From sequence record OQ790161.1: a DNA stretch of 64,000 bases; one strand, written 5' to 3'. A program made the translations under genes and the position numbers. Position 1 is the stretch's first letter, and each line of letters opens with the position of its first letter. Positions 34,961 through 44,930 of this stretch are shown here, in pieces. The notes under the pieces are model-generated. The model saw only the letters and a program-made list of their open reading frames with translations. It was not told the origin of the DNA and ran no database searches.

Positions 34961-34972
34961 TCGACGGCATAG

Positions 34973-35002
34973 CCAGAGGGCTCCCTTGCGGGAGCCCTCT
35001 GG
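34973..35002. terminator. Bidirectional hairpin at convergence of + block and tail-fibre block
   Basis: GCATAG-CCAGAGGGCTCCC-TTGC-GGGAGCCCTCTGG-TGTTATGC. Confidence 0.78.
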
Positions 35003-37831: not shown

Positions 37832-39304
37832 TTAAAGCGGGGTTTCGCCGTTGTTGACCGGCAAGTCTTCGTAGGGGTAGAACTCCACCTGCAACCCTTG
37901 GATGTCTTTGAAGGCGAAGGTGTGGCGGTAGTTGAGATCGGTGTTGCCGCCGGGGAAGGTCTGGCCTTCGATGAAGATGTTGCGACTTTGATAGATGTCC
38001 TGAGGTTGGAAGACCACAGTGCTCAGGTCCGGCACCTTATCCAACGTACAGGCATGGGTCAGGTAGTGGGTTTGATTGGACGTCTTGACAGGCAAGCCCA
38101 CCCACTCCGGAATATCCAAGCATTCGGTGACTTCACCGACCACGAGCATCTTGCAGTTCAAGCTGGACGTGGGGGTGTTGAAGTTCTTGCACCAATCCAC
38201 TGCGCGCAAGATACCGCCGCTGATCCCCGAGCCCGGCAGGACCACGGCATCAGATTGATAGAACAGGTTGGGATCGTCCCAGTCCTTATTGTAGTTGGGG
38301 AAGCTCAGGAAGACATCGCCGATGGGCGGATCACTGGCCGGAGCCAACTTCAACGCAGGCTGCGTCAACTGCGCAACAGAGAAGCGTGCCTTGAGTGCCG
38401 GGATGCGCCAGTTGAAACCAACCGGAGCAATGTCCGAACGACCCGGTACCGACACGGTCAACTGTGCGTTCGGAGAGATGTTCTCTGGCAAGACACAGGA
38501 GAGCAACCAGCAGCCGGGGGAGTACCACGACGGATACGGGATACCCGCATCATCGTAGGCCTTGATGGCTTCCACCAGCGTAGGACCATCCAGCACTTGG
38601 ATGTTACTGAAGGGCGTAGCATCGATGTCAAAGACCGGCTGATCAGCGAAGGGCAATGGTACGCCGTTGTCATCCACCAGCTTGATGATCATCTGGATGT
38701 TGGCGTTCTTACCCGTCAGCACGGTGGCCCCATTCAGTTCCGGTGTGGGGGCATCGGGGACCATGAACGAGGCCAGAACGCGATCGCCGTTGGGCTGGAG
38801 CACGTACATCTCATTGGTGCCTTGACCCATCTCCAGCTTGATGCGTCCAACCTTAGCACTGGCAGCGCCCACGGTAATCTCCACTTGTCCGAAGACATAC
38901 AGCGAATCGGGATGGGCTTGCAATACCACAGCTCCTTCCACCAGTTGGACCGGCAGAAAGTCATTGACCGTCAGGTCCGTCTTCAGGCGGGTATTGAAAG
39001 CGGCGATGTAATCACCCACCCCTGCACCCAACAGGGGATAGGTCATGTCGGTCAGTCCGAACAAAGTACTCAGGGACAGCCGGTTGTAGTTGGCGTTCAC
39101 ACGTACTTGGCCGTCGCCAGCGGTGCCTGCGCTCACGCGCACTTGGCTATTGCGGTGCTGAGGATGAGTCAGGTCGATCACACTGGCATCAATCAACTGC
39201 GGTGTGCCGAAGGTCACGTCCTGAAGTTGCAAGCTCAGGCCGGACAACTGATTCACTTCGTGCAGCAGCGTCTGCAGGACGCTGTTCGAACTGGGGTTAG
39301 ACAT
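37832..39304 (-). CDS. Virion structural / tail-fibre paralog
   Basis: Shared N-terminal domain (RNSQVRV...ANYNRLSLSTLF...PDSLYVFGQVEI) plus unique C-terminus. Confidence 0.72.
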   Translation of the reverse strand: MSNPSSNSVLQTLLHEVNQLSGLSLQLQDVTFGTPQLIDASVIDLTHPQHRNSQVRVSAGTAGDGQVRVNANYNRLSLSTLFGLTDMTYPLLGAGVGDYIAAFNTRLKTDLTVNDFLPVQLVEGAVVLQAHPDSLYVFGQVEITVGAASAKVGRIKLEMGQGTNEMYVLQPNGDRVLASFMVPDAPTPELNGATVLTGKNANIQMIIKLVDDNGVPLPFADQPVFDIDATPFSNIQVLDGPTLVEAIKAYDDAGIPYPSWYSPGCWLLSCVLPENISPNAQLTVSVPGRSDIAPVGFNWRIPALKARFSVAQLTQPALKLAPASDPPIGDVFLSFPNYNKDWDDPNLFYQSDAVVLPGSGISGGILRAVDWCKNFNTPTSSLNCKMLVVGEVTECLDIPEWVGLPVKTSNQTHYLTHACTLDKVPDLSTVVFQPQDIYQSRNIFIEGQTFPGGNTDLNYRHTFAFKDIQGLQVEFYPYEDLPVNNGETPL

Positions 39305-39305
39305 C

Positions 39306-40250
39306 TTAGCTTTCCTTGCGCAGAATGAAACTGATCGGTTGCGGGAAATCCGGATGACGGAAACGCAACCAGTACAAATAGGCGAGCGGTTCGAAGTTCA
39401 ACACATCCGGTGCACTGGGCAGGGAGACTGCATAGCGCTTGGAGGTGTCAGTGGCTTCGATCTCGTTCAGATCGCCGGCGTAGACCAGTCCGTTGGAGTT
39501 CGATCCGATGTACTGGAGAACCTTCGGGTAGTCTTCGTAGGAATCCACTTCACAGGTGTAGGTACGGCCATTGGGCGGCACGGCGTACACCAGACCACCA
39601 TCAAATTCCAGATCGCTCAGATTGGAGAACTCGTGGTAGATACTGCGCAGCTCACTGTCGTCGTAGGTGGCCACATACAGCGGATCGGTTTGCTCGCCTT
39701 GTTCGAGCACCACTTGAGCGCCGTCCGCATCTTCGACGATGGAAGCTTCACGAACGGTCAGGTAGTGACGCTGACGCTCACTGAACCACGGCGGTGCAGG
39801 GTCGTTACCCATCGACAGTGCTACGCTGCCAAAGACGCCGTAGGAGCCAGGCTTGGCCCTGAGGATAAATGCACCGTTCTCACCGAACTCGCCATTGTCC
39901 ACGTCATCTTCGGTGAACTGGAACTTGCAGGCCGCGCTGAGCTTGGGCAGCAGTTCGTAAATGGTGGTCTCGCCATCGTCTTGGAAGTACGTGGAGGACA
40001 TGGCAAACAACCGACCCAATTGCAGACGGTTGTAATGGGCATTGAAGTCAAAGGCGGTCTGTTTCAGGTCGCCATCGAAATACACCTTGACCCGCGAGTT
40101 ACGACGGTTGGGAGTGATCAGCGTCAGGACCGTGGGATCAACCAACTCGGGTGCATCGAAGTGCAGCTCCGACTGCGACAACGACAGATTCTTCTGGGCG
40201 TTGACAAAGTCAACGATGTTCTGAAGAGCCGCTTGACTGGACTCACTCAT
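39306..40250 (-). CDS. Virion structural / tail-fibre paralog
   Basis: Shared N-terminal domain (RNSRVKV...AHYNRLQLGRLF...PGSYGVFGSVAL); C-terminal module resembles those of 40944..42551. Confidence 0.72.
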   Translation of the reverse strand: MSESSQAALQNIVDFVNAQKNLSLSQSELHFDAPELVDPTVLTLITPNRRNSRVKVYFDGDLKQTAFDFNAHYNRLQLGRLFAMSSTYFQDDGETTIYELLPKLSAACKFQFTEDDVDNGEFGENGAFILRAKPGSYGVFGSVALSMGNDPAPPWFSERQRHYLTVREASIVEDADGAQVVLEQGEQTDPLYVATYDDSELRSIYHEFSNLSDLEFDGGLVYAVPPNGRTYTCEVDSYEDYPKVLQYIGSNSNGLVYAGDLNEIEATDTSKRYAVSLPSAPDVLNFEPLAYLYWLRFRHPDFPQPISFILRKES

Positions 40251-40302
40251 GGAAAACCCTCCGGGCTTTAAGTTCATAAGATCGGCAACTCAACGGCATA
40301 AG

Positions 40303-40324
40303 GCCCCTGCCCGAAGGCAGGGGC
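40303..40324 (-). terminator. UUCG hairpin (- strand) after GT9 gene, followed by CTTATGC
   Basis: GCCCCTGCC-CGAA-GGCAGGGGC on +, preceded by GCATAAG. Confidence 0.72.
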
Positions 40325-40334
40325 TATTCATTGT

Positions 40335-40940
40335 TTATCGTGGTAACGAGGCCACTGCTTTGACAATGTCCGCCGTCTCAATGCGATGCACGCCGCGAGG
40401 ATCGTACAGTACTTGCGCACGTGTCCCCAACGGTCCATGGAAGGCCGGTTTGGTCAGACCATACAGACCGACCACAGGGATGCCCATGTAATCGGCCAGA
40501 TGCAACGGACCGGTATCCACACCTACGACCACACTGGCACGGCGCAGTTGTACTTCCAGTTCATCCAACGAACTGGACTGCGACTGCCACTCCACGTCCC
40601 GACCCAGTGCATCCCAATACACCGCCAGCTCATGCCAGAGGGGAATGGGGTAGTCCTTTGCCGCCAACCGTGATTGGGAAACAATCACGATCGGTCCGGT
40701 GGGGTCATACGTGCCTTGGAAGCGCTCCCACGGCTCACTACGGGGCGTGAGTCCTGCATTGAGTATGGCCTTGCGCATTCCATCGGTGTGGTGTACACCG
40801 TCCGCATGGGGCCGATCGAAGATGATCTCCGATTGACCGTATCCGAGAAACGCATGGACATCAGAACGACAGGGAGGACAGTAACCCGCTGGGAGCAAAG
40901 ACGCCCAGCGGATTGCCGTACCTAAGGCGTAGGTCGTCAC
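40335..40940 (-). CDS. Glycosyltransferase family 9 (ADP-heptose:LPS heptosyltransferase-like), compact
   Basis: AKDYP..LWHELA and VVGVDTGPLHLADYMGIPVVGLYGLT match the GT9 signature (K.WP...W..LA; G.D(S/T)GP.HLA.A.G.P.V.L(F/Y)G.T). Confidence 0.82.
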   Translation of the reverse strand: MTTYALGTAIRWASLLPAGYCPPCRSDVHAFLGYGQSEIIFDRPHADGVHHTDGMRKAILNAGLTPRSEPWERFQGTYDPTGPIVIVSQSRLAAKDYPIPLWHELAVYWDALGRDVEWQSQSSSLDELEVQLRRASVVVGVDTGPLHLADYMGIPVVGLYGLTKPAFHGPLGTRAQVLYDPRGVHRIETADIVKAVASLPR

Positions 40941-40943
40941 GGC

Positions 40944-42551
40944 TTAGACCTGAGGCGGCGTGGAGCTGACCAGTTCCAGCTTGATGTAGCCGTTGTACCA
41001 GATCTTCAGCGGCTGGCCCGACGGACTGTTGTAGTCCGGGTGGGTGAACTGCGCCTTGATCAGCAGCAGCTGGCCGCCTTCGTTGTCGTAGTTGTTCCAC
41101 CAGTCGGTGTTGTTGGTACGCAGGCGCAGGTTGAAGCGATCGCTACCCTGGAAGGCATCAACCAGCTCACCCACCCAACGCGGCTGTCCGGCTTCACCAC
41201 CGCTGCGCTGGAAGACTGCGCTGCTGGGCTGGACGTTCATGTCAGCGTACGTGCCCGAGGAGGTGAAGGTCTGCGTGACCACTTCCGGACTGCCTTCGTT
41301 GACGGCGTAGAGGTTGCCCTCGACGAACGCGAACTCGCCGAAGTCGCCCATGGCGTCCTTGACCGAGATGGCCGACATGTCCGTCTGGTCGGAGGAGACC
41401 AGGTAGCTTTCAGCGAAGTTGTTGTCGAGCTGGCCGAAGCGGAAATCGATCTGGCGGTTGGGTTCGTCCAGAGTGAAACTCATGTCCGACGCGATCAGGT
41501 TGTAGTACATTTCATCGTCCTCTTCACCCCCTGCGATGTCCAAGGGGATTACGGTGTTCCAGTAAATGAGTGCGGGCTTGCCGTTGGCATCCACCGCATC
41601 GGGATGACTCAGCACCGCACGCCACATCAACAGCTTGCCGCGGGCTTGCGCGTACGCCGCATTCCAGTCCGTGCCGATCGTGGCAAAGGTCAGCCGATCG
41701 TTGTAGGTGTTGAGCTGGTCGATGCCGAACGTGCCCACCTTGACCAGCGCATTGCTCGAATCGGGCATCGAGGAGATGCTCGAGTACGGCATGAAGTCGC
41801 CGGGGAAATAGGTGAAGGTGCCTTTCTCGCTGGAGAGCAGGTCCGGACTGATGGTGTTGGGCTGTGCGTACAGATCACCACTCACCAGCGTCAGTTCGCT
41901 CAGCTGTGCCACATCGCTCAGGTACTTCACGACCAGTTCGGTGGGCAGGCTGGATTTGAGGAACGAGGGGTAACCGCAACCACTGCCGATTTGCAGTGCA
42001 ATGCGGGTGTTGTCGCCGGGCATCGAGACGGTAGCCACTTCCGGCGGAATCAAGGTGTAATACATCTCGTCTTCCTCTTCGGGGACTTCTTCGTTGACCA
42101 ACCGGATCGTCACCGTGCCAAAGGCATACAGAGAGCTCGCCGGAGCGCTCAGGGAGAAGGTTTGCTCTGCACCTGTGAGCGTACCTGCGGTGATGTCCTC
42201 GGCGGTCAGGGCAGAACCCAGGCGCGCGTTGATGGCCGGCAGATAATCGTGGTAGTTGGTGAAACTGGGGTTGAGGGTAAAGTCTTTGCTGCGCAGATCG
42301 AACAGCTTACTCAGCGAGAGCCGGTAATACTGCAAAAGCAGGGAGACCTCCGGGTCATCCCCGGAGGCCCCCTGTACGATGCGTACTTGGGAATTGAATT
42401 TATCCGGATCGGTGTGATCCACCGCGGTAGGGTCAACCAAGGTCAGGTCCGAGAACACGGCCTTGGTTGGGTCCATCGCAACTCCTGTGCGCTCGCGCAC
42501 GATCTGCAACAGATAAGACCGGATGCCATCACGAATGATGATGTCGGACAT
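40944..42551 (-). CDS. Virion structural / tail-fibre paralog with tandem duplicated C-terminal module
   Basis: Shared N-terminal domain (FNSQVRI...LQYYRLSLSKLF...SSLYAFGTVTI); two modules starting EEEDEMYYTLI and EEDDEMYYNLI. Confidence 0.72.
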   Translation of the reverse strand: MSDIIIRDGIRSYLLQIVRERTGVAMDPTKAVFSDLTLVDPTAVDHTDPDKFNSQVRIVQGASGDDPEVSLLLQYYRLSLSKLFDLRSKDFTLNPSFTNYHDYLPAINARLGSALTAEDITAGTLTGAEQTFSLSAPASSLYAFGTVTIRLVNEEVPEEEDEMYYTLIPPEVATVSMPGDNTRIALQIGSGCGYPSFLKSSLPTELVVKYLSDVAQLSELTLVSGDLYAQPNTISPDLLSSEKGTFTYFPGDFMPYSSISSMPDSSNALVKVGTFGIDQLNTYNDRLTFATIGTDWNAAYAQARGKLLMWRAVLSHPDAVDANGKPALIYWNTVIPLDIAGGEEDDEMYYNLIASDMSFTLDEPNRQIDFRFGQLDNNFAESYLVSSDQTDMSAISVKDAMGDFGEFAFVEGNLYAVNEGSPEVVTQTFTSSGTYADMNVQPSSAVFQRSGGEAGQPRWVGELVDAFQGSDRFNLRLRTNNTDWWNNYDNEGGQLLLIKAQFTHPDYNSPSGQPLKIWYNGYIKLELVSSTPPQV

Positions 42552-42576
42552 CTGTTGTTACCTCGCGGTTGTGCGC

Positions 42577-43203
42577 TTAGGCCTGCGACTGCTCTTCGCC
42601 GTCGGCGTCGTCGGCGACTTCATCGCCCTGGCCTTCATCGGCAGTCGGCTCGGAAGCCGGCTCGGTGTTGGCGGTTTCATCAACCGGCGGGGTCGGTTCG
42701 CTGAAGCTGGCCACACGCGCCTGCGGGGCGCTGCCGCTTTCGACCACCAGGGTGCCCTGGCCGCTGACAGCCAGCGAAGCCGGATCGGCCTTGATCAGCA
42801 CGGTCACGATGCCGTTGGTATCGACCAGCAGTTCATCGGTGACGTCGTCGACGGTCAGCTCGTACTTGATCAGCTCGTTGATCGCATCCAGCAGGTCGTA
42901 GGTGCTGGACTCATCGCCCGTGCCTTCGATGGTGGAGGCGCGCGGAGCCAGCAGGCCGGCGATGGTCAGGCGGGTGTAATGCAGGTTGAAGCTGATCAGG
43001 TCATCACCGGTGCCGACGGTCACCGGCAGGCTGGTGTTGGGGGCTTCGGGATTGGTTTCGTCGTAGCTGCCCGGCTCATAGGCCACCGGCGCGCCGATGG
43101 TCAGGTCTTCCAGCGTGTACTCGGCGTTGACGCCTTGCTGGATGAGGGCTGCGTTGAACATGTCGACGATCTGCTCGCCAACGGACTTGATGGGTTCGGA
43201 CAT
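42577..43203 (-). CDS. Virion structural paralog (shared domain plus acidic tail)
   Basis: LHYTRLTIAGLL...DPASLAVSGQGTL; very acidic C-terminus. Confidence 0.7.
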   Translation of the reverse strand: MSEPIKSVGEQIVDMFNAALIQQGVNAEYTLEDLTIGAPVAYEPGSYDETNPEAPNTSLPVTVGTGDDLISFNLHYTRLTIAGLLAPRASTIEGTGDESSTYDLLDAINELIKYELTVDDVTDELLVDTNGIVTVLIKADPASLAVSGQGTLVVESGSAPQARVASFSEPTPPVDETANTEPASEPTADEGQGDEVADDADGEEQSQA

Positions 43204-43233
43204 TTTCAGTACTCGCTCTTCAGGAAAGAAAGC

Positions 43234-43710
43234 TTACGGGCCGGCCAGCGTGATTTCCACGCTGCCATTCAGAAGCAGGGAATTGGGTGCAGCGTTGAGC
43301 AGCACCGTTTTGGGATAGCCCACCGGCCCTTCGATCTCGTGGCCGGCGATGTCGGCCGTCGAAATCTGGAACCCCAGTCGCTGTCGCAACAGCGGCACCA
43401 ACTCGTGGGTATGGTCGATCTCACCTACGAACGTACGATCACGCTCGGAGAACAACACATTCAACGAAAGCCGGTTGTAGTGCAGCGACGTGGCGAACTC
43501 ATAAGGTTGGCCATCTGCCGATCGCAAATCCACCGCCGAGTTGAAGCCGGGCTCGATCTCGAAGGTGGGAGCGTCGGCCGGAACAATGTTGTTGAGATCC
43601 CACACACGTCCAAAGACGACTTGGTCTGCGCTCAGACGGGTGCGGTACTTCTTGTTGACCACATCGAGGATCTGGTCTTCGGGGGTCTTCTGCGGATCAG
43701 GTGTGGCCAC
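43234..43710 (-). CDS. Virion structural paralog (shared domain only)
   Basis: FNSAVDL...LHYNRLSLNVLF...PNSLLLNGSVEI; AGGAG RBS + GTG. Confidence 0.72.
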   Translation of the reverse strand: MATPDPQKTPEDQILDVVNKKYRTRLSADQVVFGRVWDLNNIVPADAPTFEIEPGFNSAVDLRSADGQPYEFATSLHYNRLSLNVLFSERDRTFVGEIDHTHELVPLLRQRLGFQISTADIAGHEIEGPVGYPKTVLLNAAPNSLLLNGSVEITLAGP

Positions 43711-43737
43711 CTAGGAACTCCTTTGACGGATAAAGAT

Positions 43738-43759
43738 CCCCTGCCCCGAAGGGCAGGGG
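43738..43759 (-). terminator. UUCG hairpin (- strand) within tail-fibre array
   Basis: CCCCTGCCC-CGAA-GGGCAGGGG on +. Confidence 0.65.
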
Positions 43760-43781
43760 CACGCTGCAACGCGTTGTTGGT

Positions 43782-44930
43782 TTACGGCGCCAGCTGACCG
43801 TTCAGGCCGCCGGAGATTTCCGCCACGAAGGACACGACCACCGGATCGAAGCCGCCGTTCTTGCGCACGGCCTTCAGTTCGATGTCGTAGCTGCCGTAGG
43901 GCGCGCCAGCGGCGTTCACCGGCAGGGTCGAACCCAGCTTGCCCTTGTAGAAGGTCACGCGCTGGATGTCCTGGTACAGGGTCTGCTCTTCGTTGTAGGC
44001 GTTGACGTCATCGAGGATCAGCTCGTTGGCCGAGTCCACGAAATGCAGACGGCCGTAACGGCGCACCAGCTTGAAGTTCAGCACACCGCCGCCGGGGGCA
44101 ACGATCTTGAGCGAGCAGTCGTACAGATCGGTGAGCTTGTCACCGTTGCGCGTGTCGATCAGGTTGAACGAGTACGGCAGGTTCCAGTCGGCGTGTTCGC
44201 CGATGTTCAGGATGTACTTGCCATCGACCGAAGCGAAGGTCTGCGGCACCTTGTACAGACGCGCACCGCCGGCCACTTCGATTTCGCCATTGCTGGCCAC
44301 GATCAGGTTGGTGGAGGGATTGCCTTCGCCCACGATCAGGGTGCCGTCGTACTTCAGTGCCGACGGGGCCGGACTGACGTTGGCAGCAACGTCGGGGGTT
44401 TCGATGATCGAGGTGTCCGGCTCGATGTCTTCGAGCAGGGTGATCGAGAACTGGCCGACGAAACGCAGCGACATCGGATCGGCACGCACGACCACGTCCT
44501 TGGGGAACGGGCCGTCCGGAATCGGGGTCGGGGCCAGGTCTTCGGTGGCGCCGGTGTCGAAGGCCACGCGGACTTCTTCCAGCAGCGGCAGGATCAGGTC
44601 GCGGTTGTCCACGTAATCCTGATTGCGCAGCTTGATGTTCTTCTTGGCGAACAGGCGGCCCAGGTCGAAGCGCTCGTAGTAGATCTCGCCGGTGACCGGG
44701 TCAGCGTCGGATTCGCCGGCCTTGGGTTCGACCGGGAAGGTGATGTCGATGTCGGTGTTCCAGGACTCATCAGCCGAGGGGCGCGGGGCGCCGATGATGA
44801 GCTTCTTGGCCGGATCGGTCTCGGTGAGCTGATCGACGGTGTAGCTGGTGCCATTGGTTTCGTTGATACGTTCCAGCAGGTAGTGCTGGCCCGGCATCAG
44901 CAGGTCAGCGACCTTTTCCGAATTGGACAT
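43782..44930 (-). CDS. Virion structural paralog with distinct C-terminal beta domain
   Basis: WNTDIDI...IYYERFDLGRLF...DPMSLRFVGQFSI then a different domain. Confidence 0.72.
   Translation of the reverse strand: MSNSEKVADLLMPGQHYLLERINETNGTSYTVDQLTETDPAKKLIIGAPRPSADESWNTDIDITFPVEPKAGESDADPVTGEIYYERFDLGRLFAKKNIKLRNQDYVDNRDLILPLLEEVRVAFDTGATEDLAPTPIPDGPFPKDVVVRADPMSLRFVGQFSITLLEDIEPDTSIIETPDVAANVSPAPSALKYDGTLIVGEGNPSTNLIVASNGEIEVAGGARLYKVPQTFASVDGKYILNIGEHADWNLPYSFNLIDTRNGDKLTDLYDCSLKIVAPGGGVLNFKLVRRYGRLHFVDSANELILDDVNAYNEEQTLYQDIQRVTFYKGKLGSTLPVNAAGAPYGSYDIELKAVRKNGGFDPVVVSFVAEISGGLNGQLAP

Follow-up and report, generated by a model that had tools for sequence, protein, structure and literature searches.

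A half-size GT9-derived protein encoded behind a DUF7941 virion gene in Xanthomonas phage RTH11 and its relatives

What does a relative of lipopolysaccharide (LPS) heptosyltransferases do among the fibre-type virion genes of a jumbo phage? The question is raised by a gene at positions 40335..40940 (minus strand) of a 64,000-nucleotide (nt) stretch of sequence record OQ790161.1, hereafter the window. A sequence-only reading of the window had noticed in this gene a C-terminal signature of glycosyltransferase family 9 (GT9) and had proposed three roles for it, namely glycosylation of the phage's own fibres, late modification of host LPS or a virion-borne sugar-binding module. Positions 38000-44000 of the window are 100% identical (megablast) to Xanthomonas phage RTH11, a circular record of 312,199 bp, and window positions equal record positions minus 124,000. 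The record annotates split RNA-polymerase beta subunits, tubulin, tail-sheath and tail-fibre genes, all away from the array in which the gene lies, and related loci adjoin a major capsid gene of PhiKZ type; together these features identify RTH11 as a phiKZ-like (chimallivirus-type) jumbo phage. The gene product, here called mini-GT9, probably has as its target or partner the fibre protein translated immediately upstream, and not LPS.

GT9 homology and the donor site

The GT9 homology of the product of 40335..40940 is far beyond chance. It matches Pfam PF01075 (Glyco_transf_9) with an E-value of 4.5e-13 and 49.5 bits against a gathering cut-off of 22, the match being restricted to residues 124-179, which correspond to profile positions 173-228 of 247. 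When a profile of the 20-member family was compared with that of full-length cellular GT9s using hhalign, residues 46-201 of mini-GT9 were placed on GT9 residues ~155-329 with a probability of 99.9% (E 1.8e-33). A structure model was built with AlphaFold2 on the 20-sequence alignment of the mini-GT9 family. It has a mean predicted local distance difference test score (pLDDT) of 95.8 and a predicted template modelling score of 0.91, and consists of three helices (6-15, 26-31 and 51-61) and, C-terminal to them, a Rossmann domain with five strands (residues ~84-198). The best PDB matches of this model in Foldseek are E. coli WaaC (E 7e-9), a Veillonella GT9, HepII and then TibC, and a few uncharacterised short GT9-like phage proteins of 222-259 amino acids (aa) were found among viral models. 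E. coli WaaC/HepI (2GT1, 2H1F, 2H1H, 6DFE) and HepII (1PSW), the top matches by fold and sequence, possess the same C-terminal Rossmann domain, which according to model and alignment is one beta-alpha unit shorter in mini-GT9 than in WaaC. The signature recognised by the sequence-only reading is thus borne out by Pfam, hhalign and Foldseek, and its statement that the nucleotide-sugar half is kept and the acceptor half strongly reduced agrees with hhalign, the alignment to 2GT1, the model and Foldseek alike. The parts of the gene, all on the minus strand, are as follows:

40335..40940, gene of mini-GT9 (201 aa), running from a GTG start to a TAA stop at 40335-40337
40698..40940, residues 1-81, what is left of the N-terminal half, modelled as three helices and no Rossmann fold; Leu6-Gly7-Thr8 at 40917-40925; His50 near-invariant
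40338..40697, residues 82-201, GT9 C-terminal (donor-binding) Rossmann domain, from Pfam, hhalign, model and Foldseek
40656-40658, codon of Lys95, the equivalent of HepI Lys192
40500-40517, Asp142-Thr-Gly-Pro-Leu-His147, donor-site motif

In HepI, Lys192, Asp261 and His266 bind heptose, Lys192 and Thr187-Thr188 bind pyrophosphate, the alpha-phosphate is contacted via the backbone amides of Thr262 and Gly263, and Glu222 binds ribose (bioRxiv 10.1101/2021.06.16.448588). The family profile matched residues 176-214 and 230-318 of the HepI chain (PDB 2GT1). In this alignment Lys95 corresponds to Lys192, and Asp142, Thr143, Gly144 and His147 correspond to Asp261, Thr262, Gly263 and His266, respectively; by this measure the HepI residues that contact the donor sugar and pyrophosphate are kept in mini-GT9. 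Asp142 does not vary at all among 20 relatives, the most distant of which share 26% identity, and Lys95 and His147 hardly do.

Membership in a characterised GT9 subfamily is another matter. The GenBank product name, 'lipopolysaccharide heptosyltransferase I', is unjustified, since the NCBIfam scores are far under the equivalog cut-offs: 47.7 bits versus 185.3 for the HepI equivalog TIGR02193, 28 versus 437 for HepI NF008204 and 29 versus 134.6 for HepII. The threshold of the Aah/TibC family TIGR04414 is not reached either (15.2 bits versus 200), and the likeness to Aah/TibC is that of the general GT9 fold. PHROGs contain no match for mini-GT9. Of nine other mini-GT9s tested, eight were likewise without a match and one had a single weak match, to a family of unknown function.

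Lost parts of the enzyme

WaaC and HepII have ~320-350 aa, compared with 201 aa in mini-GT9, whose acceptor domain is cut to ~80 helical residues. The N-terminal domain of HepI carries the strictly conserved catalytic base, Asp13 (bioRxiv 10.1101/2021.06.16.448588). In local hhalign, residues 1-45 of mini-GT9 show no significant match to the GT9 N-domain (0.2% probability). When global alignment is forced, the N-terminus falls on GT9 residues ~101-150; the placement is ambiguous and likewise contains no Asp. MAFFT aligned the Leu-Gly-Thr (LGT) of the RTH11 clade with the Leu-Gly-Asp (LGD) motif of other mini-GT9s and of GT9. Profile comparisons of the mini-GT9 classes support the C-domain match only, and LGT may be equivalent to LGD as judged only from MAFFT and from a strand-bridge-then-helix pattern in the model. 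With either alignment, the RTH11 clade lacks an equivalent of the catalytic Asp, and the Asp-aligned position varies within the clade between Thr, Leu and Tyr. HepI residues ~215-229, including Glu222, have no counterpart in the alignment to 2GT1, and a 22-column gap in hhalign removes the near-invariant Gly229/Glu232 of the GT9 alignment. Thus, mini-GT9 differs from WaaC/HepI in lacking both the Asp13 equivalent and the beta-alpha unit bearing Glu222, as well as in being phage-encoded within a fibre-gene array.

The protein is a collapsed GT-B that retains the donor half and has lost its acceptor half together with the catalytic Asp and the ribose-binding unit. Because it passes Pfam GT9 and fails the two-domain, Asp13 and Glu222 features as well as the equivalog thresholds of HepI and TibC, the term GT9-derived variant suits it best, and heptosyltransferase does not.

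The same collapsed architecture, including the loss of the Gly..Glu segment, is found in LGD-type metagenomic mini-GT9s (P0036, P0053, P0077, P0104 and P0120; 223-238 aa) and in short GT9-like phage proteins in BFVD (A0A292GIQ5, 222 aa; A0A516MNJ9, 249 aa; A0A6J5T2Z0, 259 aa). These proteins are encoded on phage-like contigs, and P0120, like mini-GT9, follows a large structural-type gene. The LGD-type proteins have an invariant N-terminal Leu-Gly-Asp, similar to the Gly-Asp loop of GT9, versus Leu-Gly-Thr in the RTH11 clade. Identity is only 11-33%; neither set is located beside DUF7941 genes, and none of these proteins has been characterised. Shorter natural variants exist as well: P0030 and P0078 (181-182 aa), found among small phage genes with no DUF7941, are also without the Lys95 segment.

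Gene limits and selection

The GTG start of mini-GT9 lies 3 nt after the TAA stop of the upstream gene (40944..42551), as the sequence-only reading had noted. The GenBank model (WJJ55104.1) starts at an ATG, spans window positions 40335-40778 and encodes 147 aa; its coding sequence (CDS) is 54 codons short at the 5' end relative to the GTG form. A search of 5.8 billion proteins returned 10 relatives of ~200-214 aa with 47-91% identity, spanning the query end to end. Since the first 54 residues are conserved across all relatives, the N-terminus strongly so, and since the closest relative (L028) likewise has a GTG start 3 nt beyond the upstream stop, the 201-aa form is the true gene and the 147-aa call too short. 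P0006, a relative with 78% identity on a 315-kb contig, is also called much shorter, at 120 aa. Pairwise ratios of non-synonymous to synonymous substitution rates (dN/dS) are 0.06-0.21, so mini-GT9 is under purifying selection and is not decaying; the pseudogene-like divergence considered earlier was not found.

The DUF7941 array

Mini-GT9 is embedded in an array of minus-strand paralogs, listed here in the order of transcription:

43782..44930, minus strand, DUF7941 paralog, first of the array, 382 aa
43234..43710, minus strand, DUF7941 paralog, N-domain only, 158 aa
42577..43203, minus strand, DUF7941 paralog, 208 aa
40944..42551, minus strand, upstream partner gene of mini-GT9, 535 aa; DUF7941 N-domain at ~42081-42551, two tandem copies of module X
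41517-42074 and 40947-41519, minus strand, the module X copies of the 535-aa protein, after its DUF7941 N-domain
39306..40250, minus strand, next DUF7941 paralog, 314 aa in GenBank, with an ATG after GGAGGG; the list of open reading frames (ORFs) extends it to 40277 (323 aa)
37832..39304, minus strand, DUF7941 paralog, 490 aa
35027..37813, minus strand, DUF7941 paralog, last of the array, 928 aa

All seven genes flanking mini-GT9 pass Pfam DUF7941 (PF25613), with 29.1-61.4 bits versus a cut-off of 27 over residues ~6-155, and also match PHROGs 1037 and 2935, annotated as 'virion structural protein'. With seven more distant DUF7941-like ORFs located elsewhere in its genome (E 4e-20 to 1e-4), RTH11 encodes ~14 such proteins in all. 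DUF7941 is specific to chimalliviruses and forms a distinct virion family, which includes phiKZ gp126/127/143 and 10 Goslar proteins, two of the latter being present in hundreds to thousands of copies per virion (bioRxiv 10.64898/2026.04.21.720040). The DUF7941 module forms head-to-tail filaments associated with the peripheral baseplate; virion presence and filament formation were shown for Goslar gp22/gp23 only (bioRxiv 10.64898/2026.04.21.720040). The C-termini of these proteins often contain carbohydrate-binding, glycoside-hydrolase or leucine-rich-repeat domains, and the authors propose a 'fibre cloud' for host recognition (bioRxiv 10.64898/2026.04.21.720040).

The seven paralogs described by the sequence-only reading are thus real. 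Its designation of them as a tail-fibre array holds in that they are fibre-type virion paralogs, but they belong to the peripheral-baseplate family DUF7941 and are not classical tail fibres; the latter, together with chaperone genes, are annotated at 193-216 kb of the record. An assignment of the paralogs to fibres of the phiKZ gp131-135 type was considered and rejected, given the Pfam result and the link of the family to phiKZ gp126/127/143 in the Goslar preprint. Sequence searches of the 928-aa and 535-aa neighbours against the PDB gave no match.

Module X comprises ~185 residues and is located C-terminal to the DUF7941 N-domain of the upstream partner. No relative of it was found in Pfam or PDB, nor any further copy elsewhere in the RTH11 genome or in the related loci. 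It is tandemly duplicated in RTH11, L028 and L013/L034 and present in one copy in other lineages (L002, L005, L007, L008, L010). Its copy number differs between L002 (one) and L013 (two), though their mini-GT9s are 93% identical. For the 535-aa partner, only a poor model was obtained (pLDDT 56); it contains mostly beta strands, the module X parts being beta-rich, and its fold matches are weak (TM-scores 0.1-0.17) and are to tandem beta-sandwich adhesin domains. The beta-rich model is therefore a weak argument against module X being the missing Rossmann half of mini-GT9.

A conserved cassette and its distribution

The mini-GT9 clade comprises 12 lineages with 29-91% identity to the RTH11 protein. 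In 12 out of 12, mini-GT9 is directly 3' of a DUF7941 gene, the two overlapping or being 0-19 nt apart, and in 10 of them this upstream gene contains module X. Mini-GT9 is translationally coupled to a DUF7941 gene, usually the one with module X. The synteny check suggested with the sequence-only reading thus shows a conserved position. Among isolated phages, a related array was otherwise found in LucasX alone, whose five paralogs come with neither module X nor mini-GT9. In related phages the array is flanked, collinearly, by capsid, DnaB and DHFR genes. It is plastic in the number of paralogs and in their C-termini, yet the pair of mini-GT9 and module X persists. The DUF7941 gene just downstream of mini-GT9 is called with 89 aa in L003 (10695-10964) versus 489 aa in L002 (10695-12164), and the array is therefore plastic around the conserved pair.

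Among 50,697 phage records, mini-GT9 was found in RTH11 only, and the IMG/VR and JGI metagenomes added few further relatives (310-317 kb). The best 80 matches in GTDB (185,579 bacterial and archaeal species genomes) are ordinary cellular GT9s only, mostly from Acidobacteriota, aligned over residues ~80-200; among these 80, none covers the N-terminal part of mini-GT9 and none is from Xanthomonas. Given the single isolate, the few metagenomic relatives and the presence of only ordinary GT9s in cellular genomes, the mini-GT9 family appears to be phage-exclusive and rare.

More distant mini-GT9s are found in other phage-like contexts without DUF7941. One of them, P0120 of the Leu-Gly-Asp type (L032:833-13118, JGI Ga0164243_10000148, a 175-kb phage-like contig), overlaps the last part of a 761-aa gene and is followed by a gene for a 1458-aa DUF5122/Laminin_G_3 protein. 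Just upstream are genes for a GT2 and a hexapeptide transferase, and two sub-threshold MptE-like genes. As judged from these neighbours, the locus may be a glycan-building neighbourhood, possibly a fibre-glycosylation cluster in an unrelated large phage.

Possible functions of mini-GT9

Three considerations lead us to favour the reading of mini-GT9 as a fibre-directed glycosyltransferase, tentatively and at somewhat less than even chances: the donor contacts are the invariant residues, GT9 includes TibC/Aah, and the wider class of mini-GT9s occurs in glycan-building, fibre-like contexts. The autotransporter O-heptosyltransferases TibC/Aah (4RAP, 4RB4) have the GT9 fold in common with mini-GT9 (Foldseek E ~1e-4) and modify an adhesin encoded next door, which makes them the nearest functional analogy for a fibre-directed GT9; unlike mini-GT9, they are full two-domain enzymes that form iron-containing dodecamers. 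According to the favoured reading, mini-GT9 would bind a host nucleotide-sugar in the cytoplasm, late in infection, and pass its sugar on to the product of the preceding DUF7941 gene, which in most lineages is the carrier of module X. Acceptor-side contacts, normally given by the missing N-domain, would come from the folded fibre protein, and the reaction would do without the canonical Asp base. Some GT-B enzymes that modify proteins, such as OGT and POFUT1, work in this way, the proton being taken up by the donor phosphate. Since the Glu segment that binds ribose is deleted, a donor other than ADP-heptose is conceivable. In its full form, with a one-domain GT9 that glycosylates the module-X DUF7941 baseplate-filament protein, uses the fibre as its own acceptor domain and has no protein base, the proposal is unlikely, though not strikingly so. 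If true, it would be the first fibre-glycosylation system in chimalliviruses and the first active GT-B with a single Rossmann domain. The sequence-only reading knew of no described counterpart, and none turned up in our literature search, in which no paper linking GT9 to jumbo phages or chimalliviruses was found.

Several observations weigh against sugar transfer to the module X protein. The N-terminal Rossmann domain is wholly absent, so that the two-domain architecture of GT-B is not present, and we know of no active GT-B enzyme of a single Rossmann domain. There is no equivalent of the catalytic Asp13, the sole candidate motif being Leu-Gly-Thr, and a segment of ~15-22 residues with the ribose-binding Glu222 is deleted. 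A hidden Markov model (HMM) of the GT9 N-half, run with filters off on the 3083 six-frame ORFs of the complete 312-kb RTH11 genome, gave a best E-value of 0.26; the full-length GT9 HMM found the mini-GT9 gene alone. The upstream gene is without module X in L012 and L118, the two most divergent lineages, in which it encodes a DUF7941 + DUF5122 protein and an N-domain only, respectively. Finally, the gene order is partly inherited, since related phages are collinear around the array.

The same losses are what would be expected of a pseudo-glycosyltransferase, that is, a catalytically dead, ligand-binding and stoichiometric partner of the module X fibre protein. We regard this as somewhat doubtful, with a substantial chance of being right. 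The partner would be either a cytoplasmic assembly or holding factor, or a fibre-bound accessory that binds a sugar or sugar-phosphate and aids host recognition. No member of the clade has kept the acceptor domain or the catalytic Asp, the residue at the Asp-aligned position being variable, and the still shorter P0030 and P0078 point the same way. In almost every lineage the mini-GT9 start codon touches or overlaps the stop of the upstream gene, as would fit production at a 1:1 ratio, and mini-GT9 co-occurs with module X, though L012 and L118 lack the latter. The gene also occupies the position where tail-fibre assembly proteins are usually encoded. T4 gp38 and the Tfa proteins of lambda, Mu and P2 are products of small genes immediately 3' of their fibre partner and tightly coupled to it. 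Mini-GT9 fits the Tfa/gp38-like pattern by gene position only: there is no relation in sequence or fold, and the lack of a PHROG match means no likeness to a known fibre-assembly family. That inactive GT-B proteins can bind carbohydrate as partners in adhesin biogenesis is known from Asp1 and GtfB of the streptococcal serine-rich adhesin pathway, which are GT-B-derived and bind carbohydrate or adhesin without transfer, serving one dedicated adhesin (bioRxiv 10.1101/219105). However, Asp1 and GtfB keep both Rossmann domains and have lost the basic residues that bind the donor, whereas mini-GT9 is the reverse, its donor-contacting Lys, Asp-Thr-Gly and His staying invariant. Goslar DUF7941 proteins bear carbohydrate-binding and hydrolase domains for host recognition (bioRxiv 10.64898/2026.04.21.720040), which would suit a fibre-bound accessory, but mini-GT9 is without the DUF7941 N-domain, which anchors the other modules in the filament.

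A host-directed role, the one implied by the GenBank name, is improbable. Mini-GT9 would alter or starve envelope glycan synthesis (LPS core or exopolysaccharide precursors) by transfer, hydrolysis or sequestration of a nucleotide-sugar, limiting re-adsorption of progeny or superinfection. The closest characterised relatives are indeed LPS heptosyltransferases, and the donor pocket is retained. However, the NCBIfam scores fall far under the equivalog cut-offs, the gene sits in a late-type structural array coupled to a fibre gene, and a late protein would leave the LPS already in the outer membrane unchanged. The LPS core of Xanthomonas is not known to contain heptose, which also counts against this role. 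LPS modification fits worst because the domain that binds the acceptor, Kdo2-lipid A, is gone; of the three options raised by the sequence-only reading it is the least compatible with the data.

In Alg13/Alg14, which belong to a different GT family, the donor-binding half is a separate polypeptide of ~200 aa, and mini-GT9 resembles Alg13 in size and content; a split GT-B of this kind, with a separate N-half completing the active site, is nevertheless highly improbable, given that no N-half partner was detected in RTH11 by the HMM, which covers partners of GT9 type, that module X is predicted, in a low-confidence model, to be beta-rich and not Rossmann, and that the model of mini-GT9 alone is compact and very confident.

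Transcription signals and other features of the locus

Several hairpins and motifs lie in and around the array:

40303..40324, minus strand, GC-rich hairpin directly after the mini-GT9 stop; 9-10 bp stem, 4-nt loop, ~-20 kcal/mol in context
40292..40300, minus strand, TATGCCGTT motif just 3' of this hairpin; either a candidate late promoter of the next paralog, with its TATG at 40297-40300, or a piece of a terminator unit
43738..43759, minus strand, second GC hairpin of the array, between the 382-aa and 158-aa genes
34963..35002, minus strand, 13-bp hairpin + TATGCCGTC at the end of the array, between convergent genes
12190 (plus), 18036 (minus), 24551 (minus), 32776 (minus), 34963 (minus), 40292 (minus) and 60250 (plus), intergenic, hairpin + TATGCCGT(T/C) unit

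The hairpin at 40303-40324 has no U-tract on the gene strand. It is kept, with compensatory changes in the stem, in the close relatives L002, L005 and L013; in the more distant L008 and L010 it is absent and the next paralog follows at once. The sequence-only reading had called mini-GT9 the last gene of a transcription unit that ends in a hairpin. The hairpin is present, but the position as last gene holds by inference and for RTH11 and its close kin only. The stem sequences of the hairpins at 43738-43759 and 40303-40324 are nearly identical (CCCCTGCC and GGCAGGGG).

The hairpin + TATGCCGT unit occurs in seven copies in the window. It consists of a strong GC hairpin with a 9-13 bp stem and a 4-6 nt loop, and of TATGCCGT(T/C) within 0-3 nt. 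Near-matches to this 9-mer number 18 in the window, versus 8.2 expected, and seven of the 18 are accompanied by a hairpin. Late promoters of phiKZ have a TATG consensus, with the G as the start site (PMC4666361). The unit may be a terminator-promoter junction; its promoter reading is insecure because one copy sits between convergent genes.

Outside the window, at ~271.8-273.9 kb of the RTH11 record, three consecutive, partly overlapping CDSs are each annotated as 'tail sheath', and the tail-sheath gene appears to be broken into three pieces in the deposited sequence.

Implications

The database name 'LPS heptosyltransferase I' and the 147-aa model are misleading and should not be propagated. 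The mini-GT9 family is a natural minimal GT9, and it raises the question of whether a donor domain alone can transfer sugar or, otherwise, why the pocket is kept after catalysis has been lost. Filaments of DUF7941 proteins have only recently been proposed as a long-range host-recognition 'cloud' of nucleus-forming jumbo phages. A conserved, phage-exclusive, half-size GT9 tied to one tip module suggests that the fibre is made or used by way of a sugar-dependent step. Such a step, be it modification or binding, would bear on host recognition by Xanthomonas jumbo phages.

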